Positions 30,058 through 58,300 of a stretch of DNA of 64,000 nucleotides are shown here, piece by piece. The stretch comes from Phaeosaccion multiseriatum (Eukaryota > Protista > Ochrophyta, other classes): positions 62,001-126,000 of the forward strand of contig OZ218961.1 of assembly GCA_965112735.1 (NCBI GenBank). Reading direction: 5' to 3'. The stretch's first letter is position 1. Every line of letters begins with the position of its first letter. Under the pieces are notes generated by a model. It was not told the origin of the DNA and made no database searches. It worked only from the letters and a program-made list of their open reading frames with translations. The translations under genes were made by a program, and so were the position numbers.

Positions 30058-33000
30058 ATGGACCCCACAAAGGAGCAGGAGCAGCCCCCCCCTCCCAACA
30101 AGGCCTCCGGGGAGAAGAGAGGACAAGGCCCTTCTCTGTCCACAGCCTCGGGGCAGAAGAAGAAGCACCAGGCCTCGAAGCAGGCCTCGTGGAAAGACTT
30201 GTTTCCCCTCACCAGCAGCAGCAGCGGCGGCAGCAGCGGCAGCAACAACCCTGCGAGGGCAGGAGGGGGCGGGGGGGGGAGTTGGAGCAAATTCGACATC
30301 AGCAGCAGCAGTGGCAGCGGAGGCGCCTCAGCTGGATGCCTCCCCGGACTGGCGCACCGCGACGACGGTGGTGAGGGTGGGCAACTTGACCCCATTGAGG
30401 TGTGCGACAGCGCTGACGACGATGAACGGGAGAACATCCCCTCAGGCACAGCGGCGCCCAGTGCAGGACGGAAACTGGCTAGTGCCACGGTTGGGAGCAG
30501 GGGCGGCAGCAGCGGCAGCAACAACCGTGCGAGGGCAGGAGGGGGCGGGGGGGGGAGGGGGAGCACATTCGACATCAGCAGCAGCAGTGGCAGCGGAGGC
30601 GCCTCAGCTGGATGCCTCCCCGGACTGGCGCACCGCGACGACGGTGGTGAGGGTGGGCAACTTGACCCCATTGAGGTGTGCGACAGCGCTGACGACGATG
30701 AACGGGAGAACATCCCCTCAGGCACAGCGGCGCCCAGTGCAGGACGGAAACTGGCTAGTGCCACGGTTGGGAGCAGGGGCGGCAGCAGCGGCAGCAACAA
30801 CCGTGCGAGGGCAGGAGGGGGCGGGGGGGGGAGGGGGAGCACATTCGACATCAGCAGCAGCACCAACACCACCAGCGGTGACAGCGGGAAGGTGTGGGTT
30901 CCTTCCAAGGCGGTGCGCCTGCGAAAGGTCGCGTCCATTGGAAGAAGGCAGGATAGCGGCAATGGCACTTCTTTCTACCCCATCCAGCTGGAGGGGGAGG
31001 TCATAGTCCATGAGGATGGTGCCAACGCCTGGCAGAATGTCAAGGTGGCAGCGGAGGACAAGGAGAGGCTCGTGTGGTGGCGCCGTGACAACCCCGACGC
31101 CAGCAACGTAAAGTGTGTGAACGCTCACGTGCAGTTGGTTGTCGAGCCCACAATGAAGTCCCTCGATTATCCGGGTGTCCCGGTCGACGACATGGACTCC
31201 TTCTCGAGCAAGCTCTTCGTCGCCCACCATGGGGACTTTGAGGACCTGACATTGGCGTTCGTGTGTGACTTCGTGTCGGTTCGCTCCCATGACGAGGGAA
31301 ATGCGCCATTTACTGCCAAGTGGCGAGGGCCACAGAATGTGGCGGGCACCGCCATGCTCAACCTCGTTGGCCATCCTATGCCAGCCACAGAGGAGAGCGG
31401 CGGCAGCTACCGAACAACCCGAAGGAATGTCACACGCCTGCCGCCCAGTCTGGTCAGGATTGGGGGCGACCTCCTGAAGGAGCTGCTGGGGCTTCTGAAG
31501 CCCACTGGGGTCCTGGGCCTCTCCCGCACCGGGTATATCCGCAAGGAAATTGAGAAGGCAGCGGCAGCGTTCCCAGTGTTGTGGAGTGCCAACCCGTCAG
31601 GCTGGTATCACGACTTTTTGGCGCTCCCCGAAACCGCCCAGCTGATGCGGTTTGGGGAGCACGTCAATAGGTGCATTCTGGAGGACGTGAAGAAGAAGAC
31701 CATGGTGAAGGCAGTGGTGAGCACCCTGGACCAGAAGGCAGTGGTGAGCACCCTGGACCAGCTGCGGCTCGCACTTTCGCCGGGAGAGTGCGTCATGACC
31801 CTCAACACAATCATGAACGCCCTCTGCGAGTCCGGAAAGGAGGGAGAGGCCATCAACTTACTCGAACAGGCCCTGCCGATGACCGCTGACCTCGCCCGCG
31901 CCCACCCTGGCACCCCATGCCTCGAGCCCATCATATTCACCCGGGGCATTGACGCGTCCAGCGGCAGACTGCGCAGGCTGGATGCGGAGCTCGCCTTGAG
32001 GGTGCTACGGGCGATACAGCACCACGGAGCCGTGCTCTCGCTCACCATGACCTGCTTATCCGCAGCGACTTGGGAGGCCTTCCTCGCCCTTGATGGGACA
32101 CTGGAGACCTTGGAGAAGCTCTCAATCAGTGCTGCAAAGCGTACGCCTGATATTCATGATGGTCCCCTCCGCGCGCCCGCCCCGAGCGAAGTCATGAGCC
32201 TTCTGCCTTCCCTCAGGTCCTACACTGGGCCACTGGGCCCATACCCCGAGGGGGAGCGAGTCATATATCCCAACACCGATGGGCAGCTCAAGATCCTCGT
32301 TAACACCTCTCACGACACAGATGCGGTGGTGGACGATGCCAAGAAGGCTTATCCCAATGTATCCCGAATTTCGACATGGAGCTACAGCGAAGGGGAAAGG
32401 GCCTTTGTGAAGAATGCCGCCGGGGTGTGGGTTTCCAAGTCCCATCACCATGCTAGTGAGTTAGACATTGCTGGTCGTTGACAATGTGTGATGTGTGTTT
32501 GTCTGTTGGAGTGGTGTGCGTGTGAATGTGTGTGTGTGTGTGGGTGGGTGTGCGTGCTGTGTGCTATGGGTGTTGCTGGCGCTGTTTCCATCACGCTTTG
32601 GCTGTAATTGACGCCGTCCCCGGTGTGTCACCTCTCTCCCCCCACCACCCCCACCCGAAAGGCATGGCAGCGGCAGCGTCGAAGGGCTTTAGATGCTCGC
32701 TGGGCGATGCCTGTGACGGAGATGCTCGGGCACTCCTCGGTGTGCGCGATAGCGCCAAAGCCGCCAAACTGCATGGCACTTGCCGTGGCGAGCTCAAGTC
32801 CGTGAAGGCAGCGGAAGCAGGTGAGTTAGACATTGCTGGTCGTTGACAATGTGTGATGTGTGTTTGTCTGTTGGAGTGTGTGGTGTACATGGACAAAATC
32901 AGTTGAAACTCACCAATCCTGTTGTGATGGAGCGAGTGTGCATGTGTTGTTTGTGCGTGCGTGTGTGTGGCTTGACTCGCTCGCCCGTGCCCGCTCTCCC

Positions 33001-36110: not shown

Positions 36111-37907
36111 CTTCCCCCTCGAGAGAGAAGCTCGACTAACGAGAGCGTGACTAAACTAAATGCTAAAAGAGAAGATGAGAGAGAGAGAGAACATGTTCAT
36201 ATGAATAAAAGTAACCAAAAAGGGTTCCCGAAGGGTTTCCTTATCGGCGGCCTGCTCGCGGGCGTCGGCGTGACGAGGGGCCGCGAGACCGAAGGAAGCG
36301 CTTAGCATCCTCCGCCAAAGAGCGACGAGGGAAAGAGGAGAGGAATTGCTCTAAAAGAGCAGGAACGTCATCATTCATGACTGTCAAAGGTTCCCAAGTA
36401 TCGTCGGTGGCATTGAAGCCCTTCCAGGAGGTGTGAACCTGCCAGGGAGCGCCTTGAGAGGGACGTTGTAGGTCCTTGAAGGCGGAGACGACCCAGGTGG
36501 CTGAGTCGTGTGAGATCTGCTTAAGTAGCTCAGTACTGTCATTGAGATGCTGATCAGCGTAGTAGCGCAAGCGGCAAGCGTGCACTTCAGAGGTTTGCTT
36601 CGAGACAAGGTGTTGCACTTTGTAGACCAGAGTGTCAATCTCCTCCAGCACTTTATAAGGGCCTTGCCACACTCCAGAGAGCTTGGAGTAGCGGCTGTTG
36701 GAAGCGACAAGGACATAGATGCCCGGCATGTAGAGGCCTTCGTAGTTGAGGGCAGCCGAGAGAGCCAGCTCCTTGCGGTGTTGATGTCCAAGACGAGTAG
36801 TGTCCAGACGACGATTGTGACGGTCGCGAGCCGTCGCCCGCGAGCGCTCAAGTTGAGCAGCAACCCGTTCGTGTCTCTCTTCAAGAACCGCTTGCAGCTG
36901 AGCACCATAGTGGTTGAGCTATTCAAGAGTTGGCGGCGAGGATTGGAAGTCAACATCGAAGCTGTCGCCCTGTTGCAAGACGATATCAAGTGGAGTCGTC
37001 GAACGTAGGCCAGTGTGCAGAAAGAGTGGAGTCTCTTTGCGGGTCGAGCTGATCGTGGTGTTGATGGCAGCTTGGACCAGAGGTGTGATCAGATTGTAGT
37101 CGTCCGCGTCAATGCGAAACTCAGAGAGGAGAGAGCGGTAGACTGAAACGACAGTGCGTACAGCTCGTTCAGCGAGACCATTACTCCAAGCAGAGTATGG
37201 AGCCGAGAAGCGATGTTTGGCGCGAAGCTCAGTCGCTAGGCGCTTCATCACATGGTTGAGGAAGTGACTGCCTCGGTCACTCTGCCACTTGCTCACTACT
37301 CCAAATGTGCTGAACCAGCGCATCAATCCACCAACAGCTGCGTCTGCAGTGGTGGAAGCGCATTCGTTGAGCATGGTATAACCACTGAAGGCATCCTGGA
37401 TGACCAACAGGTATGGCAAGGAAGTGCAGCCCAAGTCATGCATGTGGACGAAGTCGAAATGAATCATCTGATTGGGCTTGGTAGGGTGGACCGCACCGCG
37501 AAGAGGGCGAGGTATACGATGCCCATGGGAGTTGGTGAGGCAATGGAGGCAGAGGTCAACAAAGCGAGTCAGGTCGGCACCAATGGTGTGCCAGTGGAAT
37601 CGTTCCGAGAGAACGGAGAGAGTGGTGTCGGCAGCGCGATGCCCTGCCGATCCTTGATGTGCAATGACAGAGAGTCGGACTTGTAGGTCAATGTCGTCAT
37701 TGGGTATCCACAGAGGACGTGAAGACGGCGATTGAGGTACCACAATGGCGTCGAAGTTAGCATCATGCTCCAAAGAAGCAAGGTGCTGCTGAGCTGCAAG
37801 CGCTTCGAGAGTGAGCGTGCCTTGGGCAGCCGCTTGAGAAGAGCGAATCTCCGCGAGAGAGGGCCACTCAAAGTCACTGTCCATGGACTGCGACGCTGGT
37901 GGACCAC
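35905..37907 (-). mobile_element. 5'-truncated Ty3/Gypsy chromovirus LTR retrotransposon: integrase + chromodomain, PPT, 3' LTR
   Basis: H...H...CLHC zinc finger; HFDF, SDRGSHF and SNGLAER (DDE core); WQGPYKV; chromodomain VHTSWKGFNATDDTWEPL. One in-frame TAG at 36919-36921. PPT GAGGGGGAAG at 36120-36111. Confidence 0.92.
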
Positions 37908-39479
37908 TCAAAGTCCTCCTCCGCCCCCCCCCCCGGAGTACTTCTTTTTTCCCCAGCTCCATGGAACGTACCTGGAGTGAAGCAGTGAGTCAGGGAGAGT
38001 GGAGTAGTAAGTCAGGGAGAGTGGAGGAGAAAGCCACGGGGAGCGGAGTGGAGTGGAGTGAGGTGAGAAGGTGGGGAGTGAGTGTGACGACGGATCCATG
38101 AGAGCGACAGGGCGACAAACGACGACGGAGAGGGAACCAACCAAGCCAGGTTTCTCTCCCTCTCTCTCTCAAACACACGCACACACTTTCTTCTCTCTCT
38201 CTCTCTCTCTCTTCTGTATCATGTTTTTATATTTCTCTAATTGTTTGTCAAGTCTTCCCACTCACTCAATCACTGACTTACTTGTGTTTGACCATGTGCT
38301 TGATTTGGCGCTTCATGGTGATGGTGAACAGCACGATGAAGTACACAAGCAGGATGGGCCAGAACACAGGCACGTTGAAGATCTCAAAGAAGGTCATGCC
38401 TAAGGCCGCCACGATGGACTTGAAGGACACAAGCCAGAACTGGAACTCCGGCAGACGACGGGAGAAGGGTCTGAGGGCGGGGTGAGGGAGGGAGGGGGGG
38501 AGGGAAGGAAGGAAGGAAGGGAGGGAGAGAGGGAGAAAGGGGAGAGGAGGAAAGGAAGAAGAGGAATATGGGGACGGAGGGAGGGACGGAAGGAGGGAGG
38601 GAGGGAGGGAGGGAGGGAGGGAGTGGGTGAGGGGGGGGAGACATTGAAGGAACGACGCAAGGTAGAGAGCAAGTGCGGACAAGCACCAGGCCAGCAGGGT
38701 GGCCTGGAAAGAGAGACCGCGTGGGGTGGGGCGGCCCTACTCCACCTTGTCTGTGTCCCCCCCCCGCCCGCCTTCCACTGCCTTCACCCGCACTACACCT
38801 CACCCTCCCCTCGCTCCTGCGCTCTCCTCCTTCGTGTCCCGTTCTGTTCCCACCGCCTCTCCCACCCCTCAGCCCTCCTCCGTTCACTGCCCCTCTCCCT
38901 CTCTCCATCCTCCTTCGCCCCCTCCTCTCTCTCCCTCTACACACACACAATGCCTCTCTACTCACCTAAACTCCTCGTCACCCGCTGTGGGAAGGGTGGG
39001 CCCTTCATTCTCAGGGTCAAACTGCGGACTCATAAACCCAATGAGGTTATTGAGAAGGAAGATACCCAGCCCGTAAGTCACTATGAACCACCCATTCACC
39101 ATATACACCCTCACCCCGTACATCACCAGTATTGCCTGGTGTCAGGACGGGAGGATCACGGGGGACAGGCCGGCGAGGGAGGGGCAGACGAAAGGAAGGG
39201 GACAAGACAGGAGCACAAGAGCATCAGCTCAGAGGAGGGAGAGACAGAGAAGGGCTGGGGCGGGAGCGATCAATGCATGCATCTCCTCTGGTAGGAAGCG
39301 AAGTAACTCAACAGTTGGGCCCCCACTGCTTCCCCCTCCTTCCCTCCCTCCTTGAGGCACTCACTCACCGCCAGGGCCAGCCACCGTCCCTGGATATGCG
39401 GTGTCGACTTGTCTAGCCAGTACTGATACGTCCTGGGGATGATGAAAGTTCGGCGGGACATTCGAGAGGGGCGGCTCAT
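37908..39479 (-). CDS. RER1: Protein RER1 (Golgi-to-ER retrieval receptor), 4 exons
   Basis: [16 protein letters not shown]; [27 protein letters not shown]...[17 protein letters not shown]; [14 protein letters not shown]...[24 protein letters not shown]. Confidence 0.95.
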
Positions 39480-42451: not shown

Positions 42452-43650
42452 GACTTGGTGGCGACTGAGGCTTGGCGACGACTGACTAACCCACGGACAC
42501 CCAAAACCCACACCGACTGCTATTGTGCCAGTGGAAGTCAAGTTGTGGGGGGTGGGATAGGGCAACGTGTGAGAGTGCTACTTGGAGAGCTCCAGGAAGA
42601 GGAGGGGTGGGGAGGGCTGGGGTGGATCAAGGGATCGACCGGATGACTGACTCGGTCGGGATGAAGGGGGAGGGAGAGCTTAGGTTTCAGTTTCGGTTGT
42701 TGCTTCCTCCACGCAGTTTCAACCGAACGATGCAATACGTCCCAGGGCAGCCGATAGCGGCTTTCGAGTCGATAATGTGGATCCATATTTGGGATGGAGG
42801 AATCGATTCATTGATTGAACTACCTTGGAAGGGCAGTTGCCTAGTTTTCAATTTCAATGTAGTAGACGACCTAAACCTAAGACACTCTATACGACAATAC
42901 CCATCAGAAGCTTGTGACGTCGACTTTCTTTCGGGTCGATATAAGGTCGATAGAAGGTCGTGCAGCGATGGATAGGGCAGGGCCAGGTCAGGGTATGACC
43001 AAGTTGAGTTGAGTATTCAATCAGTGACCACAAGTCACAACTACTGAATCAACGCAGAGAGAGCGCCATGTGTTCGATCCCTCTTCGATCACACGGTCCT
43101 CCAAAGGCGTATGTATGCATGGTAGCACGCTTCTCGCGTTCAACGAAGCCTCTATTGTATCCCTAGCTGTGCACCGAGAGAGAGAGAGAGAGAGAGAGGA
43201 ACCTTACAAAACTTCCATCTATTTGACACCTCTCGAATTGACTCGAGCTCAGACAACAGGCTGTATCATTTCATCTATGAAGCCCTCTCCAAGTGTGCTC
43301 GAGCGCATGATGTAATAAGCATGTACAAACTACGACGGGAACGACGGCTCCTCCTGCTCCTCCTCCTCCCACTCACTCACTCGCTGATTCGATACAAAGT
43401 CGAACAAAACATAATGCACCCCCGCCGGTGGGCAGTGATCGACACCGCTGCCCCCGGGGGGCTCTGCCCTGCCCCTTTGCTGAAGCTGTGAAACGCCGCA
43501 AGCTCTTACCATGCCTTCTCTCTCTCCTCTCTCCTCTCTCAAGTCTCCGATGCGCTTGTGGGACTCGGCCCAGAGAGAGTGTGTGTGGAAGGTGCCCTCC
43601 CTACCCTTCATGCTTGCCCTTGGCCCGACTTGACGCACCACTGCCTCTCC

Positions 43651-44742
43651 TCAGTCCTGGCAGTCGCAGGGGTGCCCATTGGCGTGCACCCACTGCTTGA
43701 TATCCTCAAAGGTTTTGGCGTCGATGTCCCATACCGCACCCTCCCCGTTATGCCCTTCATACACTCCTCTGTCCCTGATGACCTGTGGGCACGCCCTCTC
43801 GTTCCACTCGCACTGCACTTCTTCCGATCTGAGCCACTTCAGCACAGCAAGGCTCTTACCTTCCGTGACTGCATGTCTACAGACATACGCATCCCAATCA
43901 CAGAGGTGCCGAACATTGGCGTGGAGGAACTGCAGTACCTCGAGGTGGCCCCCTGCAGCTGCAAAGCAAGCCCCATCGCGCCAGTCGTCATAATCTTCTT
44001 GTTCCAGCAAGGCTCTCGTGGGAGGATGCTCGAGAAGCCATTCCAGGACGGGAATATGCCCACTCATGCATGCCTCGTTCCAAGAGTTGGGATCAAAGTC
44101 TGCCCCACCGTCGTCCGACAGCAACCACTTGAGCATCTCCAAGTGCCCTTCCCTTGCAGCTAGGGCACACATATAGGAGCCGTTCCCCCACCACGGGCAC
44201 TGCTCCTTGTCGGGAAGGTCCTCTGAGCGCAGCCACTTGAGAACGCTCAGGCCATGCTTGCTGTTCTCCGCTGTTTCGTGACACACATCCAAGTCCCAGG
44301 GACAGTCCTTGCCATGGAGGGCCTTGCATACCTCGACATCTCCGTACCGGGCAGCGGCCTTGAAGAGCTTGGCATTTGGCTCGAGGCCCTGCCGACCTGT
44401 CGCCCAGTTCACGCAGTCCACTGAGATGACCACAGACGAGTATGCTGTCTTCACTGCTGGATACAAAGCGGTGTAGCTGGCCTTCCACTCCTTGCTCACA
44501 CCAGCCACGAAGCAGAGGTGGCCCTTTCCCAAGTGGGCCAAGATGGCACGAAGCAGCTCGAGATTTTCCAGGGTCTCGTGGCAAGCTTCAAAGAGCAGCC
44601 CATTCACTGAGGGCGTAGCACTGGCACCCCCACTTGCTGTTGTTGCTGGAGACCGTCTCAGCCTCCTTCCCTGTGCAGAGTCATGCGGCGCCTCCCCATG
44701 CCCCAATGCCGTTCTCCTCCTCCGCTGCAGCCTCGTCTCCAT
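43651..44742 (-). CDS. F-box-like/ankyrin-repeat protein, copy 1 (N-terminal type A)
   Basis: Uninterrupted ORF; NLELLRAILAHL...FVAGVSKEWK followed by CPW-x-C..AA..G.L..LKWL repeats. Confidence 0.85.
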   Translation of the reverse strand: METRLQRRRRTALGHGEAPHDSAQGRRLRRSPATTASGGASATPSVNGLLFEACHETLENLELLRAILAHLGKGHLCFVAGVSKEWKASYTALYPAVKTAYSSVVISVDCVNWATGRQGLEPNAKLFKAAARYGDVEVCKALHGKDCPWDLDVCHETAENSKHGLSVLKWLRSEDLPDKEQCPWWGNGSYMCALAAREGHLEMLKWLLSDDGGADFDPNSWNEACMSGHIPVLEWLLEHPPTRALLEQEDYDDWRDGACFAAAGGHLEVLQFLHANVRHLCDWDAYVCRHAVTEGKSLAVLKWLRSEEVQCEWNERACPQVIRDRGVYEGHNGEGAVWDIDAKTFEDIKQWVHANGHPCDCQD

Positions 44743-45359
44743 TATTTCGTCGAAATGGGTCTCGGGATAAACACGAGTAAGTAAGCACCCAGATGGTAGG
44801 AGGAGAAAGGTTGCTGAAGAAGGGGGGAGTGGAAGGAAAGGCGGAGCGGAGCACAGGGAGAGAGAGAGAGAGTGTGAGCGGCTGTGGAAGAAGGGCAGCA
44901 GCAGAGAGAGCAGATGGCCAGCATGATTCATACATCTGTTGTAACTCCTCCCACTCCTCTTCCCCACAACTCTTCCCCGCTTCCCCCGTCTTGCTCCCCC
45001 CTCAAGAACAGAGGGGCGGGCTATCTCCGGTAGCAGGCACTTACCAGCGCCAGCAGAATCCTTTCTTTCTATCAGCCTCACCCCCTTCCCTATGCTGCCT
45101 ACTGTTTTCATGCGTGGGAGGTCTTGCGGCCCGTATATCGTATATCGTACGGAGCCATATCACGGAGCTCCTGGCAGGCCCGCCATCTGTGGGTCTGGAT
45201 GTCGAGACCCTGAGGCAGGCAGCGCGCAAAGGCCCAACAAAACATATTAATCACGAGAGCTTCTCTGATCAGTGCCATGCTGCGCTCCAAGCTGCAAGCT
45301 TCCTCCGTGTGATACCTTCCCTCGACCAACCCCCCTGGCCACCGTTGACAGCCCTTCGC

Positions 45360-45409
<50 letters not shown>

Positions 45410-45806
45410 ACACAACCACACACACACATACTTCATAAGTAATTCTTAGGTTGATTCATATAAGAGAATTGCTGCTCCACTTACTCACTCAAGCTCTGTC
45501 AGGCCGTACTCGCTGCCGAAGTCCTCGTCGAACCATATATACGTATTCACTGAAGCCTCCCACCAGCCGAAGGGCGCAAAGTGTCCCGCGAACATGCCAC
45601 AGACACGATGATGAGGGCACCTCCCTCTGCTGATAGACCGCTTGGAACAAACATTCACAGCAGCGCCTCGAAGCGCGACAGCCACAGCCGTCCATCCTGC
45701 TCTGTACTGACCCGCGCTCACCGGAAGCCTCCCCAAACGTACGCTAACTGCCCCCCCACCCCTCCCCCCATGTCTCTCTCTCCATCTGTGCGAGCTTGTT
45801 CTCCTC

Positions 45807-46817
45807 TCAGTCCTGGCAGTCGCAGGGGTGTCCATTGGCGTGCACCCACTGCTTGATGTCCTCAAAGGTTTTGGCGTCGATGTCCCATACCGCGCCCTTG
45901 TTAAACTGTTCATGCACTCGTCTGTCCCTGATGACTTGCGGGCACGACATTGCGTCCCACGGACACTGCACTTCCTCCGATCTGAGCCACTGGAGCACGG
46001 CAAGGCTCTTACCCCTCAAGACTGCATATATACAGACCACAATATTCCAATCATAGAGGTGGCGAGCATTGGCGTGGAGCAGCTGCAGTACCTCGAGGTG
46101 GCCCCCTGCAGCTGCAAACCAAGCCCCATCGCGCCACCTGTTATCATCATTTTCTTCCAGTAAGGCTCTCGTGGGAGGATGCTCGAGAAGCCATTCCACG
46201 ACGGGAATATGCCCACCTTCACATGCGACGTTCCAAGAGACGGCAAGAAAGTTTGCCCCACCGTCGTCCGACAGCAACCACTTGAGCATATCTAAGCGCC
46301 CTTGACGTGCAGCTTGGCAACACATTTCGCAGCCGTTTTCCCACCACGGGCACTGCTCCTTGTCGGGAAGGTCCTCTGAGCGCAGCCACTTGAGTACTCT
46401 CAGGCCATGCTCTCTGTTACGCACTGTTGCCTCGCACACATACTCACTCCAGGGACAGTCCTTGCCATGGAGGGCCTTGCATACCTCGACATCTCCGTAC
46501 CGGGCAGCAGCCTCGAAGAGCTCCTCAGTTAGCTCGAGGCCCTGCCGACCTGTCGCCCAGTTCACACACTCCACAGAGCTGACCACGGATGAAAAGACGG
46601 TCTCTGCTGCTGGATACAAATCGGTGCAGTACTTGCCCCTCCACTGCGTACACACACCAGCCACAAAGCAGTGGTGCCCCTCTCCTACGTACTCCAAGAC
46701 TTCGCGGAGCAGCTCGAGATTGGCCAGCAGGACTTCGTGGCAGGCCTCGAACCCTTCATCTGAAGCAGCGGCAATGGCAAGGACCAATGTCCGTCTCCGC
46801 TGCCGTCTTGTCTGCAT
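45807..46817 (-). CDS. F-box-like/ankyrin-repeat protein, copy 2 (type B)
   Basis: Paralogue of copy 1; starts MQTRRQRRR. Confidence 0.85.
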   Translation of the reverse strand: MQTRRQRRRTLVLAIAAASDEGFEACHEVLLANLELLREVLEYVGEGHHCFVAGVCTQWRGKYCTDLYPAAETVFSSVVSSVECVNWATGRQGLELTEELFEAAARYGDVEVCKALHGKDCPWSEYVCEATVRNREHGLRVLKWLRSEDLPDKEQCPWWENGCEMCCQAARQGRLDMLKWLLSDDGGANFLAVSWNVACEGGHIPVVEWLLEHPPTRALLEENDDNRWRDGAWFAAAGGHLEVLQLLHANARHLYDWNIVVCIYAVLRGKSLAVLQWLRSEEVQCPWDAMSCPQVIRDRRVHEQFNKGAVWDIDAKTFEDIKQWVHANGHPCDCQD

Positions 46818-47395
46818 TTTGCCGTCAAAGCCAGTAAGCCCTTGGGATGAGGGGGGGAGGATGTACCCCCGGAGACCCAACGGGAAGGTGCGAGTAGGTC
46901 CTATGGGAGGCGATCAGCTTCTGTGCCAGGGGGACAGCGGCAGGGGGAGAGCGGAGGAGGGGGACAATGAGAGCTTGTGGAGAAGAGGCGGCTCTGAAAT
47001 GCCTGCTCCAGGGGAGAAAAGGAGAAACAAAAACGTCTGCGGCTTGTCGTGCAGGCCCCATGGGCTTGTCAATCTCCCCAGCCACAGATCAGAGCAAAGG
47101 CTTACCCGAATCACGCTACAAGTAGTACCAAATTCAAAAAAGGAAAAAATCTGTGACTTTGGATGAGGAGGCCGCGAAGATGCATGCAAAAGATCCTTAC
47201 ACTATTGTATGTCGATAGGCTGCAGGGCCGGGTCAGGGTATGACCACGTTGAGTTGAGGAGTCAATCGGTGACCACAAGTCACAAGTACTGACGCAGAGA
47301 GAGTGCCATGTGTTGGATCCCTCTTCGATCACACGGTCCTCCAAAGGCGTATGTACGCATGGTAGCACGCTTCTCGCGTTCAACAAAGCCTCTAT

Positions 47396-47719
47396 CCCTA
47401 ACCCCAAATTTATGGTCATAAAAAGTGGACTTTATTTTCGCACGTTGGGCGAAAATGGAGGTTTCCGACCGTCATTTTTTTTCCTCCTTTAAATCATGAT
47501 CACACTCCTCCACGCGCGGATGATGCAATCACTGGTCGGGTCGTCATTTTGAGGGCGATACCAAGACAGGCTAATGTCATATTCTCGTCGGCGCCTCACA
47601 CGACAACGCCATCAAACTCCAATTTTAAGGATGAAAGAAAATGACCGTCCATTCCGGCCCTTCGAAAAATTAATGTCCTATTTTTATGATATTAATTATG
47701 ACATTAATCGGGGTTAGGG
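47396..47719. mobile_element. 324-bp MITE with CCCTAACCCC...GGGGTTAGGG termini, ~100-bp imperfect TIRs and a 4-bp TSD CTAT (piggyBac-like ends)
   Basis: The paralogous flank at ~43148 shows the empty site GCCTCTATTGTATCC; CTAT at 47392-47395 and 47720-47723. Confidence 0.9.
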
Positions 47720-48239
47720 CTATTGTATCCCTAGGTATGCACCGTATTGGAAGAGGGGAGACCGGACCCTTACTTCAATCTATTTGACACCTCTCGAATT
47801 GACTCGAGCTCAGACAACAGGCTGTATCATTTCATCTTTGTAGCCCTCTCCAAGTGTGCTCGAGCGCATGATGTAAGAAACATGGACTGTGTGATGTAAG
47901 AAACATGTGCTAACTACAACGGGAACGACGGCTCCTCCTGCTCCTCCTCCTCCCACCCACTCACTCGCTGATATGATACAAAGTCGAACAAATCACAACG
48001 CACCCCGCCGGTGGGCAGTGATCGACACCGCTGCCCCCGGGGGCTCTGCCCTGCCCCTTTGCTGAAGCTGTGAAACGCCGCAAGCTCTTACCATGCCTTC
48101 TCTCTCTCCTCTCTCCTCTCTCCTCTCTCAAGTCTCCGATGCGCTTGTGGGACTCGGCCCAGAGACAGTGTGTGTGGAAGGTGCCCTCCCTACCCTTCAT
48201 ACTTGCCCTTGGCCCGACTTGACACACCACTGCCTCTCC

Positions 48240-49322
48240 TCAGTCCTGGCAGTCGCAGGGGTGCCCATTTGCGTGCACCCACTGCTTGATATCCTCAAAG
48301 GTTCTGGCGCCGATATCCCATTCCTCCCCGTAATACCTTTCATACACTCCTCTGTCCCTAAGGATCTGTGGGCACGCCCTCTTGTTCCACTCGCACTGCA
48401 CTTCTGCCGATCTGAGCCATTTTAGCATAGCAAGGCTCTTACCCCTCAAGACTGCATGCAGACAGGCCCGAGCATCCCATTCACAGAGGTGGCGAGCATT
48501 GGCGTGGAGGAACTGCAGCAATTCGAGGCCGCCCCAGCCAGCTGCATACCAAGCCCCATTGCGCCACTTGCCGTCTTCATTTTCTTCCAGCAAGGCTCTC
48601 GTGATAGGATGCTCGAGAAGCCATTCCACGACGGGAATATGCCCACCTTCAAATGCGTCGTTCCAAGAGACGGCATCAAAGTCTGCCCCAGCGTCGTCCG
48701 ACAGCAACCACTTGAGCATATCTAAGCGCCCTTCACTTGCAGCTAGGGCACACATTTCGCAGCCGAAAGCGTACCATGGGCACTGCTCCTTGTCGGGAAG
48801 GTCCTCTGAGCGCAGCCACTTGAGTACTCTCAGGCCATGTGCTTTGTTGAACGCTGTTGCCTCACACGCCTTCTCATCCCAGGGACAGTCCTTGCCATGG
48901 AGGGCCCTGCATACCTCGACATCTCCGTGCTCGGCAGCGGCCCTGAAGAGCTCCCCAGTTAGCTCGAGGCCCTGCCGACCTGTCGCCCAGTTCACGCACT
49001 CCACTGAGCTGACCACAGATGAGTATGCTGTCTTCACTGCTGGATACAAAGCGGTGTAGCTGGCCTTCCACTCCTTGCTCACACCAGCCACGAAGCAGAG
49101 GTGGCCCTTTCCCAAGTGGGCCAAGATGGCACGAAGCAGCTCGAGATTTTCCAGGGTCTCGTGGCAAGCTTCAACGAGCAGCCCATTCACTGACGGCGTA
49201 GCACTGGCACCCCCAGATGCTGTTGTTGCCGGAGACCGTCTCAGTCTCCTTCCCTGTGCAGAGTCATGCGGCGCCTCCCCGTGCCCCAATGCCGTTCTCC
49301 TCCGCTGCAGCCTCGTCTCCAT
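48240..49322 (-). CDS. F-box-like/ankyrin-repeat protein, copy 3 (type A)
   Basis: Paralogue; starts METRLQRRR. Confidence 0.85.
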   Translation of the reverse strand: METRLQRRRTALGHGEAPHDSAQGRRLRRSPATTASGGASATPSVNGLLVEACHETLENLELLRAILAHLGKGHLCFVAGVSKEWKASYTALYPAVKTAYSSVVSSVECVNWATGRQGLELTGELFRAAAEHGDVEVCRALHGKDCPWDEKACEATAFNKAHGLRVLKWLRSEDLPDKEQCPWYAFGCEMCALAASEGRLDMLKWLLSDDAGADFDAVSWNDAFEGGHIPVVEWLLEHPITRALLEENEDGKWRNGAWYAAGWGGLELLQFLHANARHLCEWDARACLHAVLRGKSLAMLKWLRSAEVQCEWNKRACPQILRDRGVYERYYGEEWDIGARTFEDIKQWVHANGHPCDCQD

Positions 49323-49718
49323 TGTTTCGTCGAAATGGGTCTCGGGATAAACACGAGTAAGTAAGCACCCAGATGGTAGGAGGAGAAAGGTTGCTGAAGA
49401 AGGGGGGAGTGGAAGGAAAGGCGGAGCGGAGCAGCGAGACAGAGAGAGAGAGTGAGCGGCTGTGGAGAAAGGGCAGCAGCAGAGAGACCAGACGGCCAGT
49501 ATGATCACACATCTGTGTTGTGTTGTAACTCCTCCCACTCCCCTTCCCCGCAGCTGCTTCCCCGCTTCCCCCGTCTTGCTCCCCCCTCAAGAACAGAGGG
49601 GCGGGCTATCTCCGGTAGCAGGCACTTACCAGCGCCAGCAGAATCAGCCTCGCCCCTTCCTTATGCTGCCTACTTTATTCCCGCGTGGGAGGTCTTGCGG
49701 CTTTGGATCGGATGAGAA

Positions 49719-49763
49719 ACTTTATTGACTTAATAGGAATCACCTAAGAAACTGAAAGTGTGA

Positions 49764-49805
<42 letters not shown>

Positions 49806-50845
49806 TCGACCCCTGACACACTATCCGCTATCCGCTATCGCCGGCGCCAGCCGGCGCGCTATCCGCTATCGGCAGCGTCAGCCGGCTTTGGGGGGGGGGG
49901 GGGTTGTTGGGGCGTGCTATCCGCCAGCCGGCGCGCTATCCGCTATCGGCCCCCGGGGGGGGCGATAGCGCGCTATCGAGAATGTGGGCGATAGTGTGTC
50001 AGGGGTCGAGTGTAGGTGTCGATGTGTCTCCGGGGCCCTCGAGGGGCCGGTTACTCCCCCTCTAGGGCGGGGAGGGGGAGTGCGGGACCGGCTCCGCGGT
50101 TGAGCCGACCCAGGAAGGCGCGCTCCCGCTCCGAGAGCCACATCTGGTGGCTGCAGCTGACGAGGCGGCGTAGACTTGTCAGGACGTGGCCCTTGGTGGT
50201 GGAGGAGCCAGTGCGGCCAGTGTGGGTAACCACGTGCTCGGCGAGTGCGTGCAGGAGCGATTGCGCCTGTGCGCCGAGTCGGCCGTGGGTCTCGATGGCG
50301 AAGGTGGAGAGGCGAACACGCTCTCGGTCGTAGGTGCCCCTGTAGTGTCGCTCCTTGCGGATCTCGCTGTTGGCGGCTGCCGCTCCCGGTCTAATGTTCG
50401 TGCGGAGCACATTCAAGGCCGTCCTGCAGAGGTTGTTACTCAGGGTTAGGTCAAGCATATGCGCCGGGTGGGCAAAGGTTGGGTCGCGGGCTCCGGAGAG
50501 GGCGCCTCGGGGGAGGGTGGCGTCCATGCGGAAGGTCCGGGCGATGTTGTGCGGGGGGTTGAAGAACTCCGAGCTCTCGTGTCCGACGCGGGAAACGTAG
50601 TTCTGTTTGAACATGTCCTCGACGGAGGAGAGCATCCCGGTGTGGTAGAGAGTGCTCTGGTTGGGGCACTGGATGGCGTGAGAGGAGTCGGCGCGTGTGT
50701 TGCAGCGGGTGCAGACTAGTGCGTCGGGTTCTCCAGGGCTGTAGAGGCAGTTGATGCCGAGGGAGCGTCGTAGGGCCCCTACCATGTCTTGGGCCGGCAT
50801 GGAGACCTGTCCAGGTGAGGTGGCGATGAAGCCCATGGCCGCTTT
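49719..50845 (-). mobile_element. 5'-truncated non-LTR retrotransposon of the RLE type (CRE-like): CCHC knuckle, restriction-like endonuclease, 3' UTR
   Basis: CTRC...SHAIQC; FRMD; LDLT; EIRKERHY; FAIETHGRLG; stop at 50051. Candidate TSD ATGAGAA at 49712-49718 and 50846-50852. Confidence 0.8.
49806..50009. mobile_element. MITE (204 bp), 20-bp perfect TIR TCGACCCCTGACACACTATC, 6-bp TSD GTGTAG, nested in the RLE element's 3' UTR
   Basis: TIR and TSD read directly; internal GCTATCC and GCCGGCGCCAGCCGGC repeats. Confidence 0.88.
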
Positions 50846-50906
50846 ATGAGAAGGCCAGGCCCGCCATCTGTGAGTCTGGATGTCGAGGCCCTGAGGCAGC
50901 CAGCAA

Positions 50907-51328
50907 CCAAGCGGACCAGGTATGGGGTGCCACAGGTAGGCATGGAAGGCCAGGGTGGGGACATCCACTATGACCCCACGCGGTACCACCTCGTCCATTT
51001 CGCAATAGAACAGCAAGGCGCATTTGGTCCTTCTGCTCAGATGTTTATGAAAACACTCGCCACCCACATGGCTGGGGGGCACGAACATCTGGACACGAGG
51101 GCTTATGCGAGAGCTGTTTTCGTCATTCGGCGACGATTAGCCGTAGCGCTCCAGCGGGCCCGACACGAACGATCGGTTCGACACAGGATCCTGGCTGGTA
51201 TCAACTTTGTTCCAATGGGGAGAACTGATAAGTCAGAGGGACACGACCTCGAGGGCTAAGTTCCCCGGGGCGGTGAGACATTACTTTTAGACAACCATAG
51301 ATGGCACTTACGGGTGTAATATATAAGC
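50907..51328 (+). mobile_element. Second, different 5'-truncated RLE non-LTR fragment
   Basis: KRTRYG...YHLVHFAIEQQGAFGPSA...RRRLAVALQR; TSD GCCAGCAA at 50899-50906 and 51329-51336; the paralogous site at ~45210-45240 lacks the insert. Confidence 0.75.
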
Positions 51329-51813
51329 GCCAGCAAAGGCCCAAACACATTACGGCTGCGCTCCAAGCTGCAAGCTTCCTCCGTGTGATGCTTTCCCTCG
51401 ACCAACCCCCCTGGCCACCGTTGACAGCCCTCACTAACACATAAGTAATTCTTAGGTTGATTCCTATAGGAGAATTGCTGCTCCACCGACTTCCCTCAAT
51501 CTCAGTCTAACACTGCTCGCTGCCGAAGTCCTCGTCGAACCATATAGACGTATTCACTGAAGCCTCCCACCAGCCGAAGGGCGCAAAGTGTCCCGCGAAC
51601 ATGCCACAGACACGATGATGAGGGCACCTCCCTCTGCTGATAGACCGCTTGTAACAAACATTCACAGCAGCGCCTCGAAGCGCGACAGTCACAGCCGTCC
51701 ATCCTGCTCTGTACTGACCCACGCTCACCGGAAGCCTCCCCAAACGTACGCTAACTGCCCCTCCACCCCTCCCTCCATGTCTCTCTCTCCATCTGTGCGA
51801 GCTTGTTCTCCTC

Positions 51814-52911
51814 TCAGTCCTGGCAGTCGCAGGGGTGCCCATTGGCGTGCACCCACTGCTTGATGTCCTCAAAGGTTTTGGCGTCGATGTCCCATACCGC
51901 GCCCTCGTAATACCATTCATACAATCCTCTGTCCCTGATGACCTGTGGGCACGACATTTCATCCCACTCACACTGCACTTCGTCCGATCTGAGCCACTTC
52001 AGCACAGCAAGGCTCTTCCCCATCAAGACTGCATTCATACAGAGGCTCACATCCCAATCACAGAGGTGGCGAGCATTGGCGTGGAGCAGCTGCAGTACCT
52101 CAAGGCGGCCCCCTACAGCTGCAAACCCAGCCCCATCGCGCCAGTCGTCATCATCTTCTTGTTCCAGCAAGGCTCTCGTGGGAGGATGCCCGAGAAGCCA
52201 TTCCACGACGGGAACATGTCCACCTTTACATGCGAGCTTCCAAGAGACGGCACGAAAGTCTGCCCCACCGTCGTCCGACAGCAACCACTTGAGCATCTCC
52301 AAGCGCCCTTCAATTGCAGCTTGGCAACACATTTCCAAGCCGCTAGCGTCCCATGGGCACTGCTCCTTGTCGGGAAGGTCCTCTGAGCGGAGCCACTGCA
52401 GTACTCTCAGGCCATGTGCTTTGTTGAACGCTGTTGCATTACACACATTTCGATCCCAGGGACAGTCCTTGCCATGGAGGGCCTTGCATACCTCGACATC
52501 TCCGTGCCGGGCAGCGGCCCTGAAGAGCTTGGCACTTAGCTCCAGCCCCTGCCGACTTATCGCCCAGTTCACGCACTCCACTGAGCTGACCACAGACGAA
52601 AACGCTGTCTCCACTGCTGGATACAAAGCGGTGTAGCTGGCCTTCCACTCCTTGCTCACACCAGCCACGAAGCACAAGTGGCCCTTTCCCAAGTGGGCCA
52701 AGATGGCACGAAGCAGCTCGAGATTTTCCAGGGCCTCGTGGCAAGCTTCAAAGAGCAGCCCATTGTATCCGGAACTTGAAGCAGCGGTAACACTGGTACC
52801 CCCACATGCTGTTGTTGCTGGAGACCGTCTCAGCCTCCTTCCCTGTGCAGAGTCATGCGGCGCCTCCCCGTGCCCCAATGCCGTTCTCCTCCGCTGCAGC
52901 CTCGTCTCCAT
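51814..52911 (-). CDS. F-box-like/ankyrin-repeat protein, copy 4 (type A 5' end, type B 3' flank)
   Basis: Paralogue; its downstream flank 51500-51813 matches the flanks of copies 2 and 5. Confidence 0.85.
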   Translation of the reverse strand: METRLQRRRTALGHGEAPHDSAQGRRLRRSPATTACGGTSVTAASSSGYNGLLFEACHEALENLELLRAILAHLGKGHLCFVAGVSKEWKASYTALYPAVETAFSSVVSSVECVNWAISRQGLELSAKLFRAAARHGDVEVCKALHGKDCPWDRNVCNATAFNKAHGLRVLQWLRSEDLPDKEQCPWDASGLEMCCQAAIEGRLEMLKWLLSDDGGADFRAVSWKLACKGGHVPVVEWLLGHPPTRALLEQEDDDDWRDGAGFAAVGGRLEVLQLLHANARHLCDWDVSLCMNAVLMGKSLAVLKWLRSDEVQCEWDEMSCPQVIRDRGLYEWYYEGAVWDIDAKTFEDIKQWVHANGHPCDCQD

Positions 52912-53629
52912 TGTTTCGTCGAAATGGGTCTCGGGATAAACACGAGTAAGTAAGCACCCTAGTAGGCCTTGCTGGCCGGAGCAGATAGGTTGCTGAAGAA
53001 GGGGGGAGTGGAAGGAAAGGCGGAGCGGAGCAGCGAGACAGAGAGAGAGAGTGAGCGGCTGTGGAAGAAGGGCAGCAGCAGAGAGACCAGACGGCATGAT
53101 CACACATCTGTGTTGTGTTGTAACTCCTCCCACTCCCCTTCCCCGCAGCTGCTTCCCCGCTTCCCCCGTCTTGCTCCCCCTCAAGAACAGAGGGGCGGGC
53201 TATCTCCGGTAGCAGGCACTTACCAGCGCCAGCAGAATCCTTTCTTTCTATCAGCCTCGCCCCCTTCCTTATGCTGCCTACTTTATTCACGCGTGGGAGG
53301 TCTTGCGCCCGTATATCTTGTATGGAGCTCCCGGTTGTTTATTTTTTGACGGAGCTCCGTCTGCCAGGCCCGCCATCTGTGAGTCTGGATGTCGAGGCCC
53401 TGTACCCGACCCCCCCCCCCCCCCACACACTTTCACACTTTCAGTTTCTTAGGTGATTCCTATTAAGTCAATAAAGTACCCCCCCCCCCCTGTCAACACC
53501 TGATCAGTGCCATGCTACGCTCCAAGCTGCAAGCTTCCTCCGTGTGATGCCTTCCCTCGACCAACCCCCCTGGCCACCGTTGACAGCCCTTCACTAACAC
53601 ACACACACACACTGACACACATAAATCTT

Positions 53630-53737
53630 AGCTTCATTGCTATCGACCACATTCTCGATAGCAGATAGCACGCCGGCTGGGGCGCCGGCGATAGCAGATA
53701 GTAGATAGCAGATAGCAGATAGCACGTAAGGTGTCGA
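53630..53737. mobile_element. Degenerate inverted relative of the 49806 MITE
   Basis: CACATTCTCGATAGC is the reverse complement of GCTATCGAGAATGTG; GATAGC repeats; ends ...GTGTCGA; absent from the paralogous flanks at ~45440 and ~51450. Confidence 0.6.
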
Positions 53738-54110
53738 TTAGGTTGATTGATTCCTGTAAGTTACCAAAATAACCCTAACCCCTTCACTGACTCCCTCAAT
53801 CTCAGCCTGACACTGCTCGCTGCCGAAGTCCTCGTCGAACCATATGTACGTATTCACTGAAGCCTCCCACCAGCCGAAGGGCGCAAAGTGTCCCGCGAAC
53901 ATGCCACAGACACGATGACGAGGACACCTCCCCCTGCTGACAGACCGCTTGTAACAAACATTCCAGCAGCGCCTCGAAGCGTGACAGTCACAGCCGTCCA
54001 TCCTGCTCTGTACTGACCCACGCTCACCGGAAGCCTCCCCAAAAGTACGCTAACTGCCCCCCCTCCCCTCCACCCCTCCCCCCATGTCTCTGTGCGAGCT
54101 TGTTCTCCTC

Positions 54111-55121
54111 TCAGTCCTGGCAGTTGCAGGGGTGCCCATTGGCGTGCACCCACTGCTTGATCTCCTCAAAGGTTTTGGCGTCGATGTCCCATAACAGGGA
54201 CCCTCCATACTGTCTGTCCCTGATGACTTGTGGGCACGACTCTTCGTCCCACTCGCACTGCACTTCCTCCGATCGGAGCCACTTGAGCACGGCACTCTTA
54301 CCCCTCAAGACTGCATTTCTACAGATCTCCGAATCCCATTTACAGAGGTGGCGAGCATTGGCGTGGAGGAACTGCAGCACCTCGGGGCCGCCCCAGCCAG
54401 CTGCATACCAAGCCCCATAGCACCAGTCGTCGCCATCATTTTCTTCCAGCAAGGCTCTCGTGGGAGGATGCTCAAGAAGCCATTCCACGACGGGAATATG
54501 CCCACCGTGGCATGCATCGTTCCAAGAGATGGAATCAAAGTCTGCCCCACCGTCGTCCGACAGCAGCCACTTGAGCATATCTAAGCGCCCTTCACTTGCA
54601 GCTTGGGCACACATTTCGGAGCCGTTTTCCAACCATGGGCACAACTCCTTGCCGTCCTCTGAGCGCAGCCACTGCAGTACTTTCAGGCCATGTGCTGTGT
54701 TGAACGCTGTTGCCTCACACACGTCTTCAGACTTCCAGGGACAGTCCGGATACTCGTACTTACCATAGAGGGCCTGGCATACCTCGACATCTCCGTACCG
54801 AGCAGCGGCCAGGAAGAGCTTGTCACATAGCTTGAGGCCCTGATGCTGACTTGTCGCCCAGTTCACACACTCCACAGAGCTGACCACGGATGAAAAGACG
54901 GTCTCTGCTGCTGGATACAAATCGGTGCAGTACTTGCCCCTCCACTGCGTACACACACCAGCCACAAAGCAGTGGTGCCCCTCTCCTACGTACTCCAAGA
55001 CTTCGCGGAGCAGCTCGAGATTGGCCAGCAGGACTTCGTGGCAGGCCTCGAACCCTTCATCTGAAGCAGCGGGAATGGCAAGGATCGTGCATGCCCTTCT
55101 CCGCTGCCGTCTTGTCTGCAT
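54111..55121 (-). CDS. F-box-like/ankyrin-repeat protein, copy 5 (type B)
   Basis: Paralogue with small in-frame indels. Confidence 0.85.
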   Translation of the reverse strand: MQTRRQRRRACTILAIPAASDEGFEACHEVLLANLELLREVLEYVGEGHHCFVAGVCTQWRGKYCTDLYPAAETVFSSVVSSVECVNWATSQHQGLKLCDKLFLAAARYGDVEVCQALYGKYEYPDCPWKSEDVCEATAFNTAHGLKVLQWLRSEDGKELCPWLENGSEMCAQAASEGRLDMLKWLLSDDGGADFDSISWNDACHGGHIPVVEWLLEHPPTRALLEENDGDDWCYGAWYAAGWGGPEVLQFLHANARHLCKWDSEICRNAVLRGKSAVLKWLRSEEVQCEWDEESCPQVIRDRQYGGSLLWDIDAKTFEEIKQWVHANGHPCNCQD

Positions 55122-55326
55122 TTTACCGTAATCAAGTAAGCCCTTGGGATGAGGGGGGGAGGATGTACCCCTGGAGACCCAACGGGAAAGGTACGAGTAG
55201 GTCTCGCGGGAGGCGATCAGCTTCTGTGCCAGGAGGACAGCGGCAGGGGGGGGGCGGAGGAGGGGGACAATGAGAGCTTGTGGAGAATTACGGGTGTCGT
55301 CAGATGGCTTCCATCTGTGACTCTGG

Positions 55327-58300
55327 ATGAGGAGGCCGCTGCGATCGATAATCGATCGCAGCGGCAGGCAGCGCTTCAGCGCGATGCGACTGCTGCTGCT
55401 TCAGAGCGTGCGAGGCTTTTGGGTTGTGATAGTTCTAGTCATTTCTCTCCGGGATGAGGGGCAGTGGAAGCAGCAGCAGCAGCGGCAGCAGCAGCTTTGG
55501 GTTGGTGCAGCGAAGCCGCCTGCAGACACGTGGATCAATGACAGTAGCGGCAGCTGCAGCGGTGAAGAACTACACGAGAAGCAGCAGCACGAGCAGGACA
55601 AGAAGCCGCCGCAGTGCAGGGCGGCGTATGCTTTATCTGGGCATATTCGCTCCTTCGCCCAACCTCGTGTGCACCAATCGGTTGTTGCCAATGTACTGCG
55701 GCCGCTGAGGCAGGGTGGCTGCAGGGTTGACGTGTTTCTCTACCTCACGCGAGAGGACGAGGTGCGTCGAGCGATGTGCGAAGTGCGAAAGGGGGGGGGG
55801 GGGGGGACGGGAAGGAGGGGAAGGGAGAGGAGAGGAAGGGAAAGGAAAGGAGAAGAGAGGATTTAACGAGAAGATAGGAGAGGAGGGGAGAGAAGAGTAA
55901 GGGGGAGGAGGAGAAGGGGGAGGAGAAGGGAGAGGAGCGGAGATGCCAAAAAGGTCGGGAGCGGATAGAAGGGAGAGGAGAGGAGGAAGGAGGAGGAAGA
56001 TACAAGACGAGCTTGGGACAGGACGGGACGCAGCAGTAAGGGTTTGCACTTGTCAAGGGCGAGAAAGGAACGTACACTTTACCCTCCCCACTCCCTGTCT
56101 TTGACCTTGGCTTAGCATCACCTCCCTCTTGTTGGCTTATTGCCCCCCCTCCCCCCCATCGCTGCCCCTCTCCCCGTCTCTCCCTCTCTCCTGGCCCATA
56201 CGCATCCCTCCCCCTCCCCTCCCCCTACCCAGGTGCCCCCCCTGGAGGAGCGAGGGGCTTCCCACTGGAACCGTTTCACTCCCCACACCCCCTCCTTGGA
56301 CAGCCTGGGCCCCGCTCTCGCGCTGCTGGCCCCGGTGCGGTGGGTGTGGCACCAGGAGCAGGCGGGACTCATACCCAACGGATGCAACATGACCACCCCC
56401 TCGGGCGACGCCAAGGTCCCCGGGGTGGAGGCGGCCTACTGGCAGCTGTACAAAAACCTCGCAGTGTACAACATGGTTGAGGAGTACGAGCACGAACAGC
56501 AGACCCACATAGCTCACAACTGGCAGCAGCACGGGGTGGAGGAGGAGCCGTTCCGGTACGACTGGATTCTGCGATCGAGGCTGGATATTGGCTGGATGGC
56601 GCCACTGCCCCCCCTGCTGGCCTTCCCCTCCGACCGCGCGTACTTTGGCTCGTCGTTCTGGCCTCTCTCCGATCAGTTCGCGCTGCTGCCTCGCCACCTC
56701 GCTCGCCGTTACTTCACGGCGATTCACAGCTTCTATCGCTGCCCACCGGTTGGTGGTTCAGCCTCAGACTCAGCAGTCGCAAATGGCGGCATCAACGGTG
56801 GCCGGTGGTGGGTGTCCTTCGGGGCGGGCGTGACTGAGAATCTCCTCTGGCAGCACCTGCACCACCCACCCCCTCACCCTCCCGGCCCGGAGGAGGCCGC
56901 CCCCCTCTCCCGCTCCGAGATGGAGGAGCAGGAGCAGGGGCAGGCATATGGGCATGACTTGTTCCCCTACCAGTACTACGACTTCAACTACGTCATTGTT
57001 CGCTCCTCCGAGGGCGGCATGTGCGACACCTTCCTCCCCCTCAAGCTGCCCATGCAGCTCATGCACAGCTACGGAAGGATGGGGATGGCAGTGGATGGGG
57101 GCTCGCAGCAAGCCGTGGGCCCTGTGCACAAGTACCACAAGAAAGTGTGTCAAATGGCCTTCCCACCGGTGGGGCAAGAGGAGGAGGCAGAGGACCAGCA
57201 GCCTCGTTCTTCTTCGGCACGCAGGAACAGCAGCAGCAGTAGCGAGGAGGAGGGGGAGGTGGAGGAGGGGAAGAAGGGGAAGAGGACGGGGGAGGGAAGA
57301 GAAGAAGAAGATGGTGTGTCTGATGCGGCTCCCCGGGGTGGGGGTGGGGGTGGGGGTGAGGATGGCTGTGCTTCCCCGTCTCCGGCCTCCTCCCCGCCCT
57401 TTGCGTTGTGGCCCGCAGCTGACAGAGACGAGCTTACCGCCATTCGAGCAGAGGTGAGAAGAGAGGAGAGGGGAGGGGGGAGATGGGAAGCTTACCAGGG
57501 TAGGTAGGCAGGTAGCACGATGTGGCCTGCGAGGTGGAAAGGAGCGCTGGCCCTCCCCGATCCCCCTTAACGCTACCTCTTAACGCTACCTTTTTAACGC
57601 CCCCCCATGTTAACGTTACCCCCAACCCCTTATCGCTTTGACTTACCCCCACAGGTGTTGGAGGCGATTTCTCTCATTGACTTACGCCCTCACCCCCAGC
57701 AGCAGCAGGGGGTACAGCAGTTGGTGATACAGCAGCCCACGCTGCGAGTGCTGACGCTGGACGGGCACGCGTCCCAGGGGGGTGTGGTGGGGCAAGTGGC
57801 CACGGCCTTCCTGCTCACAGATGGCGATGTACTGACCCTAGGGCAGGCCCTCAGATGCGAGGTAAGTGACAAGTGTATCAGTTTCATCGGTTTCACCATC
57901 AGTCTCAGTAGAGCTCACCGCACCGGTGGCTTTGAGGCTCTTTGCATCTGTGTGCCCTTGTTAGTAGCTGTCATCTGTGTGCCCTTGTTAGTAGCTGTCA
58001 TCTGTGTGCCCTTGTTAGTAGCTGTCATGTAACCCCCCCTCCCCTCCCCTCTTCGCCTCGCGCTTACACTTGGCAGGGGCTGTTAACAGCGGCTGTACAC
58101 GGATTTCACACCACACTCACCGCGTGACCTTCTCCCTCCCTCCCCCCCCCCCAGTTTCTTAGGTGATTCCTATGAAGTCAATGAATAAACCCCTCCCTCC
58201 CCCCCCCCCCATCCGCTCGCATTCCTGCCCTCCCCTCCCCTCCTTCTCTTCCCATCCCTTCGATTTCCGGCTGCTCGCCTTGTCCTTGTCTGTGCCGTTC

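Follow-up and report, generated by a model that had tools for sequence, protein, structure and literature searches.

How can a row of neighbouring genes hold one protein scaffold nearly fixed while a single face of it changes from copy to copy, and what could such genes be for? The question is raised by a 64,000-nucleotide stretch of the ochrophyte alga Phaeosaccion multiseriatum (contig OZ218961.1, positions 62,001 to 126,000), called the window below and numbered from its own first letter. At 43651-55121 it holds an array of five open reading frames (ORFs) on the minus strand, arranged head to tail, each ending in CQD and a stop codon and each encoding an F-box-like head followed by ankyrin repeats. 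The initial annotation had described five intact genes without coding introns, and this was confirmed: all five frames are open, they contain no coding introns, and every indel in the alignment of the five copies is in frame. The likely start codons lie at 44742, 46817, 49322, 52911 and 55121, and the stop-side ends at 43651, 45807, 48240, 51814 and 54111; starts were chosen at the conserved METRLQ or MQTRRQ, the longer starts of the ORF finder showing no conservation. The encoded proteins of 336-365 amino acids carry one of two head types, A or B, and the genes are followed by one of two 3' flanks, X or Y. Gene 1 (43651..44742, 363 amino acids) and gene 3 (48240..49322, 360) combine a type-A head with flank X, and gene 2 (45807..46817, 336) and gene 5 (54111..55121, 336) a type-B head with flank Y. 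Gene 4 (51814..52911, 365) is a chimera, with a type-A head and an A-type 5' flank joined to 3' flank Y. We argue here that the five genes probably form a tandem host family of SCF (Skp1-Cullin1) substrate receptors whose evolution is driven by diversifying selection.

The first part of the question concerns selection, which the initial annotation had proposed. Site models were run over codons 118-376 of the five sequences, whose tree is nearly star-shaped. M2a was preferred to M1a on 15 of 15 trees, with a likelihood-ratio test (LRT) statistic of 58-70; about 17% of codons fall in a class whose omega (dN/dS, the ratio of nonsynonymous to synonymous substitution rates) is about 6. M8 gave an LRT of 64 against both M7 and M8a, and 58 once gap-adjacent codons were removed. 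Harsher models leave less of the signal without abolishing it: the LRT for selection is 21-24 if multi-nucleotide changes are allowed, and 12.8 (p about 0.002, omega about 3) with codon-level rate variation. The signal of positive selection thus persists in every model, and its size is model-dependent.

A stronger argument than the size of the LRT is the spatial pattern of the selected sites. Positions were numbered by the ankyrin consensus. Groove positions 5, 6, 9, 10, 13 and 14 of the repeat, comprising the loop and the exposed face of helix 1, have an omega of 4.06 (3.3-5.0), and the positions randomised in designed ankyrin repeat proteins (DARPins) one of 3.2, as against 0.27 in the core of helix 1 and 0.42 in helix 2. 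Selected sites occupy 14 of 36 positions in the groove versus 1 of 66 in the comparison set (p=7e-7). Positive selection is thus concentrated on the ankyrin groove, in line with the initial annotation. The ankyrin loop and inner-helix face is a known binding interface (PMC4986451). Outside the repeats, omega is 0.32 in the head and 0.15 in the C-terminal tail. Variation is clustered along the alignment as well, with 156 of 259 columns invariant and 44 of 259 holding at least three residues. Two earlier descriptions need to be amended. Variation had been said to fall just after each CPW motif; it is indeed clustered there, but helix 1 (at positions 9, 10, 13 and 14 of the repeat) and a loop of the C-terminal cap are also variable. 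A single fixed scaffold had been described, but the N-terminal heads are of two old types.

Other sources of this variation were considered and rejected. Targeted hypermutation of the kind caused by diversity-generating retroelements (DGRs) does not fit, since selected codons contain all four bases and silent change is not raised around them; no non-coding template copy for a DGR-like system was present in the window. Local mutation hot spots were rejected because silent variation is flat near selected codons (5/25 beside them versus 23/105 elsewhere), which also speaks against local hypermutation. A recombination artefact was rejected as the source of the selection signal, as 60 null simulations of mosaic genealogies without selection gave a maximum LRT of 17.1.

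How, then, is the variation distributed among the copies? Copies 2 and 5 are set apart from copies 1, 3 and 4 by 37 of the 42 informative sites of the head. The ankyrin part shows every one of the ten splits, and like splits lie close together along the gene (p<=5e-5 in a test modelled on the pairwise homoplasy index, PHI). The conflicting sharing of blocks that had been noted earlier is present in the alignment, with ATAFN in copies 3, 4 and 5, MCCQAA in 2 and 4, EQED in 1 and 4, and GAWYAAGWGG in 3 and 5, the last being common to both copies in the DNA itself for several codons. Four-fold degenerate sites differ by 36% between A and B heads and by 0-7% within a type, whereas every pair of copies differs by 8-14% in the ankyrin part, indicating that exchange between two old lineages has homogenised their ankyrin parts. 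Homologous flanks differ by only 3-7%, so recent duplicates have at the same time been made more different than their flanks. Segmental exchange between the copies, as earlier proposed, is therefore supported.

Similarity between the paralogs has a sharp limit. Flank X of genes 1 and 3 (43152..43650, minus strand, with a second copy at 47720-48239) is 96% identical between its copies, and flank Y of genes 2, 4 and 5 (45434..45806, minus strand, with copies ending at 51813 and 54110) is 96-97% identical, while X and Y are unrelated to each other from the stop codon onward. Paralog similarity ends exactly at the stop codon (51813/51814 and 54110/54111), both between the two flanks and in many contigs that come from other places in the genome, a boundary that fits either conversion confined to coding DNA or a coding part that spreads as a cassette. 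The combinations of head and flank in genes 1-5 lead us to infer that an A-B gene pair was duplicated and that gene 4 then arose as a chimera by unequal crossover between A and B. The A-type genes share a 5' flank, which lies at 44743..45130 (minus strand) for gene 1 and recurs upstream of genes 3 and 4. It contains a conserved splice-donor-like G/GTAAGT at 45044, 49629 and 53223, about 300 nucleotides upstream of the start codon, together with a pyrimidine tract. A-type genes thus probably carry an intron in the 5' untranslated region, which in turn would suggest that they are transcribed.

Is the array real, and is it the whole family? Over 236-237 nucleotides copy 5 shows no difference to contigs of both the first and the second sample, and it is therefore not an assembly artefact. 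As regards polymorphism among strains, the second sample may be of the same strain as the first. No contig spanning the whole array was found, and the gene order is thus without independent bridging. Contigs were compared over 50010-55330, where summed depth is not a copy number. Per run, 13-17 contigs of the first sample (S1) and 7-16 contigs of the second agree with the end of the coding region and then depart exactly at the stop codon into mutually unlike flanks, and loop sequences foreign to the five copies are present in contigs of the DNA runs. Together, these unlike flanks and new loop variants indicate further family members elsewhere in the genome.

What the genes might do depends on their architecture: a basic tail at the N-terminus leads into a head of three helices, which is followed by six CPW-type ankyrin repeats and, at the C-terminus, a cap. 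The head, at 54903..55046 on the minus strand (residues about 26-73 of gene 5, with an equivalent position in all copies), is preceded by an Arg-rich stretch that is a possible nuclear signal. Type A (copies 1, 3 and 4) and type B (copies 2 and 5) share 72-77% identity in DNA and 52% in protein, and the heads of genes 2 and 5 are identical over 186 nucleotides. Many CPW-ankyrin proteins have N-termini homologous to these heads, and 11 of 30 such aligned heads have Pfam F-box matches (best 1.9e-9). A profile of the homologous heads matched 18 PDB entries, all 18 of them F-box proteins (best E 1.6e-4), and when the folded head was compared with 48,161 chains, the 11 highest-ranking structural matches were F-box chains from F-box/Skp1 complexes, including Skp2 and Legionella AnkB. 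Because of this homology we call the head a divergent F-box, in agreement with the initial annotation, and regard it as a putative docking site for Skp1. The ankyrin repeats (54267..54836, minus strand, residues about 96-285 of gene 5) bear the selected groove sites. Pfam Ank_4 scores are 42-46 bits against a cut-off of 22.7 in all five proteins, the AlphaFold model has a pLDDT of 86, and its PDB matches are ankyrin proteins. The cap, CP...WVHANxxPCxC with a variable loop (54114..54257, minus strand), is strongly conserved towards its end (omega 0.15 over the last 26 codons), and may hold a zinc site formed by its conserved Cys and His residues. Head, ankyrins and cap account for the whole proteins, and no NACHT or NB-ARC domain was found in the Pfam scan.

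Taken at face value, this architecture suggests a mechanism. The F-box head would dock on Skp1 and the six-repeat ankyrin groove would bind a target protein, which would then be ubiquitinated. Purifying selection keeps the head, the outer helices and the C-terminal cap, and groove residues are driven apart between copies, as the pattern of omega shows. Judged by the pattern of the copies, new specificities arise from point substitution and short conversion tracts, and copy number changes through unequal crossover. A function as SCF adaptors is, judged from the sequences, reasonably likely. The most likely driver of the divergence would be conflict with fast-evolving foreign or selfish proteins, such as those of viruses, intracellular microbes or transposons, which is also the proposal made for nematode F-box genes; defence against foreign proteins is a possibility that falls somewhat short of probable. 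Still more tentative, and rather unlikely in our judgement, is a genome-wide intracellular defence in which F-box-ankyrin proteins on Cullin1 and ankyrin-BTB proteins on Cullin3 would form a DARPin-like library of hundreds of groove variants, renewed by conversion and crossover and destroying viral or foreign proteins. Such a system would have originated in stramenopiles independently of the F-box/MATH-BTB strategy of nematodes.

Several observations weigh against diversifying SCF receptors. The head motif lacks the canonical LP start. The isolated head of gene 5 has F-box as its sole Pfam match, below threshold (E=0.045, 14.1 bits versus a cut-off of 20.5), F-box was not detected in the five full-length proteins by the Pfam scan, Foldseek returned no match for the head, and its structural matches have low Z scores of 2.9-3.7 (root-mean-square deviation 1.9-3.5 over 40-48 residues). 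The region was found in five runs, none of which is recorded as RNA, and the site models cover only five sequences. The sub-threshold Pfam match and the Foldseek result, together with the coexistence of two head types at just 52% protein identity, would suit diversifying binders of variable partners that act outside SCF as decoys, inhibitors or sensors, their head being an F-box relic or a folding cap. We consider this unlikely, given that the head retains the three-helix F-box fold, is under purifying selection (omega 0.32) and is identical in two of the genes. It is also conceivable that there is no adaptive repertoire at all, and that selection is mimicked by relaxed surface constraint, clustered mutation and patchy conversion that draws on old paralogs, in a family whose copy number drifts; a genomic-drift view of plant F-box genes is put forward in PMC3030570. 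Mobile-element debris is abundant in the array, and with rate variation and multi-hits combined most of the signal is lost, the LRT falling from 64 to a modest 8.1 (p about 0.02) under this harshest model. The pooled Nei-Gojobori dN/dS of the ankyrin part is 0.63-1.07, called below 1 overall, a value that is uninformative because scaffold and groove are averaged together. Nevertheless, such a mimicry of selection is distinctly improbable: all five frames are intact with indels only in frame, silent variation is flat near the variable sites, the selection test is significant under every model, and the excess is limited to the groove, whereas helix 2, much of it exposed as well, is conserved.

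The initial annotation had further suggested that the genes might come from a virus, which the evidence does not support. Coding regions without introns in an intron-rich genome are what capture of endogenous ankyrin or F-box effectors from a giant virus, followed by amplification in the host, might leave behind, and the best BFVD matches are ankyrin and F-box-ankyrin proteins of Pandoravirus, Cedratvirus and Pithovirus (E to 1e-8). These matches are, however, generic, at 14-26% identity. The only relatives with the full architecture are two proteins of another alga, Chrysoparadoxa australica (CAM9526596.1 and CAM9164428.1, about 33% identity), and in the gene of CAM9526596 an intron separates the head from the repeats. 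A comparison of 155 fetched proteins found the cap motif W-V-H-A-N-x-x-P-C-x-C in just these two. The kinship suggests that the host is probably a stramenopile close to the brown and yellow-green algae. A word-index protein search returned just two distant proteins, and a search with the Chrysoparadoxa cap returned only itself; both searches were length-limited, so that blanks say little. A search of the ESM Atlas gave generic ankyrin clusters only. Neighbours in the window are host-like, namely fragmented but otherwise ordinary eukaryotic genes for Vps35, a cyclic-nucleotide-binding (cNMP-binding) protein, an NmrA-like and a YchJ-like protein; none of ten window ORFs scanned contains a viral hallmark, GC content is unshifted across the array, and a scan of IMG/VR viral contigs confirmed no locus. 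Since the nearest kin and the neighbours are algal or host-like, recent capture from a virus is unlikely, and capture with subsequent host amplification is the least probable of the explanations considered here, to the point of being very improbable. The CPW class as a whole may have been exchanged with viruses, or have arisen in them, long ago.

The array also contains mobile elements, which we regard as passengers outside the gene family. Between genes 3 and 4, two high-copy elements lie back to back at 50051..51330, with remnants at 45175-45223 and 53363-53402. Both carry a FAIE-type restriction-like endonuclease motif (44% identical over 34 amino acids), one in addition a Cys/His knuckle, and their depth in the DNA runs is hundreds of times that of single-copy sequence. 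They are probably truncated retrotransposons of the non-LTR class (without long terminal repeats, LTRs), an assignment that rests on motifs and copy depth, as the ORF at 50051-51088 has no Pfam or homolog match. The 5' end of the plus-strand element recurs at the equal place upstream of A-type genes, indicating that it was duplicated with the unit.

Further repeats were noted in and around the array. At 47396-47719 there is a 324-bp AT-rich insertion resembling a miniature inverted-repeat transposable element, whose terminal inverted repeats are telomere-like (CCCTAACCCC ... GGGGTTAGGG); it has additional inverted arms in its interior and is flanked by a duplicated CTAT target, and the sister unit has the empty site at about 43151. 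A 204-bp element at 49806-50009 has terminal inverted repeats of 20 bp that match perfectly, and GCTATC repeats in its interior; a fragment of it at 53656-53708 shows high depth in the DNA runs. A short dispersed repeat, GT-rich at its tail end, occurs in both orientations at 49719-49772, 53424-53477 and 58152-58200, and is possibly the 3' end of a short or long interspersed element (SINE or LINE). Elsewhere in the window, we observed an integrase (H2C2 + rve) of an LTR retrotransposon at 36919-37962 on the minus strand, a near-perfect 39-bp minisatellite of about 24 units at 13823-14746 in the Vps35 region, and an 822-amino-acid open frame at 30013-32481 on the plus strand with an internal duplication of about 89 amino acids and a weak PPR-like match.

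Several known systems resemble the array in part. According to PMC8120010, which summarises Thomas 2006, F-box genes of Caenorhabditis show tandem expansion, a conserved F-box and a positively selected substrate-binding domain, with a hypothesised anti-pathogen role. The array shares tandem expansion, an F-box under purifying selection and a positively selected binding domain with the Caenorhabditis and plant families. Unlike them, its binding domain consists of stacked CPW ankyrins and a Cys/His cap in place of FTH, FBA, LRR or Kelch, and its host is a stramenopile alga. Legionella AnkB (PDB 5k35) and the F-box/ankyrin proteins of Pandoravirus and Pithovirus likewise join an N-terminal F-box to ankyrin repeats, and the array head aligns with AnkB bound to Skp1 at Z 3.2. 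Those proteins are pathogen effectors, however, whereas the array genes are chromosomal in the host, arrayed and selected in the groove; identity is at most 26%, and the array proteins lack a CaaX ending. The hypervariable ankyrins of fungal NLR proteins (PMC4986451) are similar in their positive selection on the concave face (inner helices and loop) and in sequence exchange. In contrast to them, the array proteins have no NACHT/NB-ARC or effector domain, and exchange takes place between paralogous genes by position, not among near-identical repeats inside one gene. Within the same broad lineage, the ROCO-LRR and NB-ARC-TPR genes of brown algae (PMC3341825) encode clustered, positively selected repeat proteins that were proposed as immune receptors, but these shuffle one-repeat exons, while the array lacks coding introns and its proteins bear an F-box where the others have a GTPase or NB-ARC domain. 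The closest counterparts remain the two Chrysoparadoxa proteins, which have the same head, CPW ankyrins and WVHANxxPCDC cap; they differ in that neither showed a further copy within 10 kb and in the intron of CAM9526596. A literature search of incomplete coverage yielded no account of algal F-box-ankyrin repertoires.

We show here that the groove of five neighbouring algal genes evolves several times faster than silent DNA and has been swapped between copies. The fixed scaffold and varied groove, which overlaps the positions randomised in DARPins, reveal which positions of the CPW repeat evolution uses, and the array offers small soluble proteins for testing. An architecture best known as a weapon of pathogens, in Legionella AnkB and the F-box ankyrins of giant viruses, may thus be a tool of the host as well. 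How algae recognise viruses and intracellular parasites is poorly understood, and earlier candidates were NLR- and ROCO-like genes. A selected family of F-box-ankyrin proteins points to ubiquitin-mediated destruction as a possible further route of algal defence.

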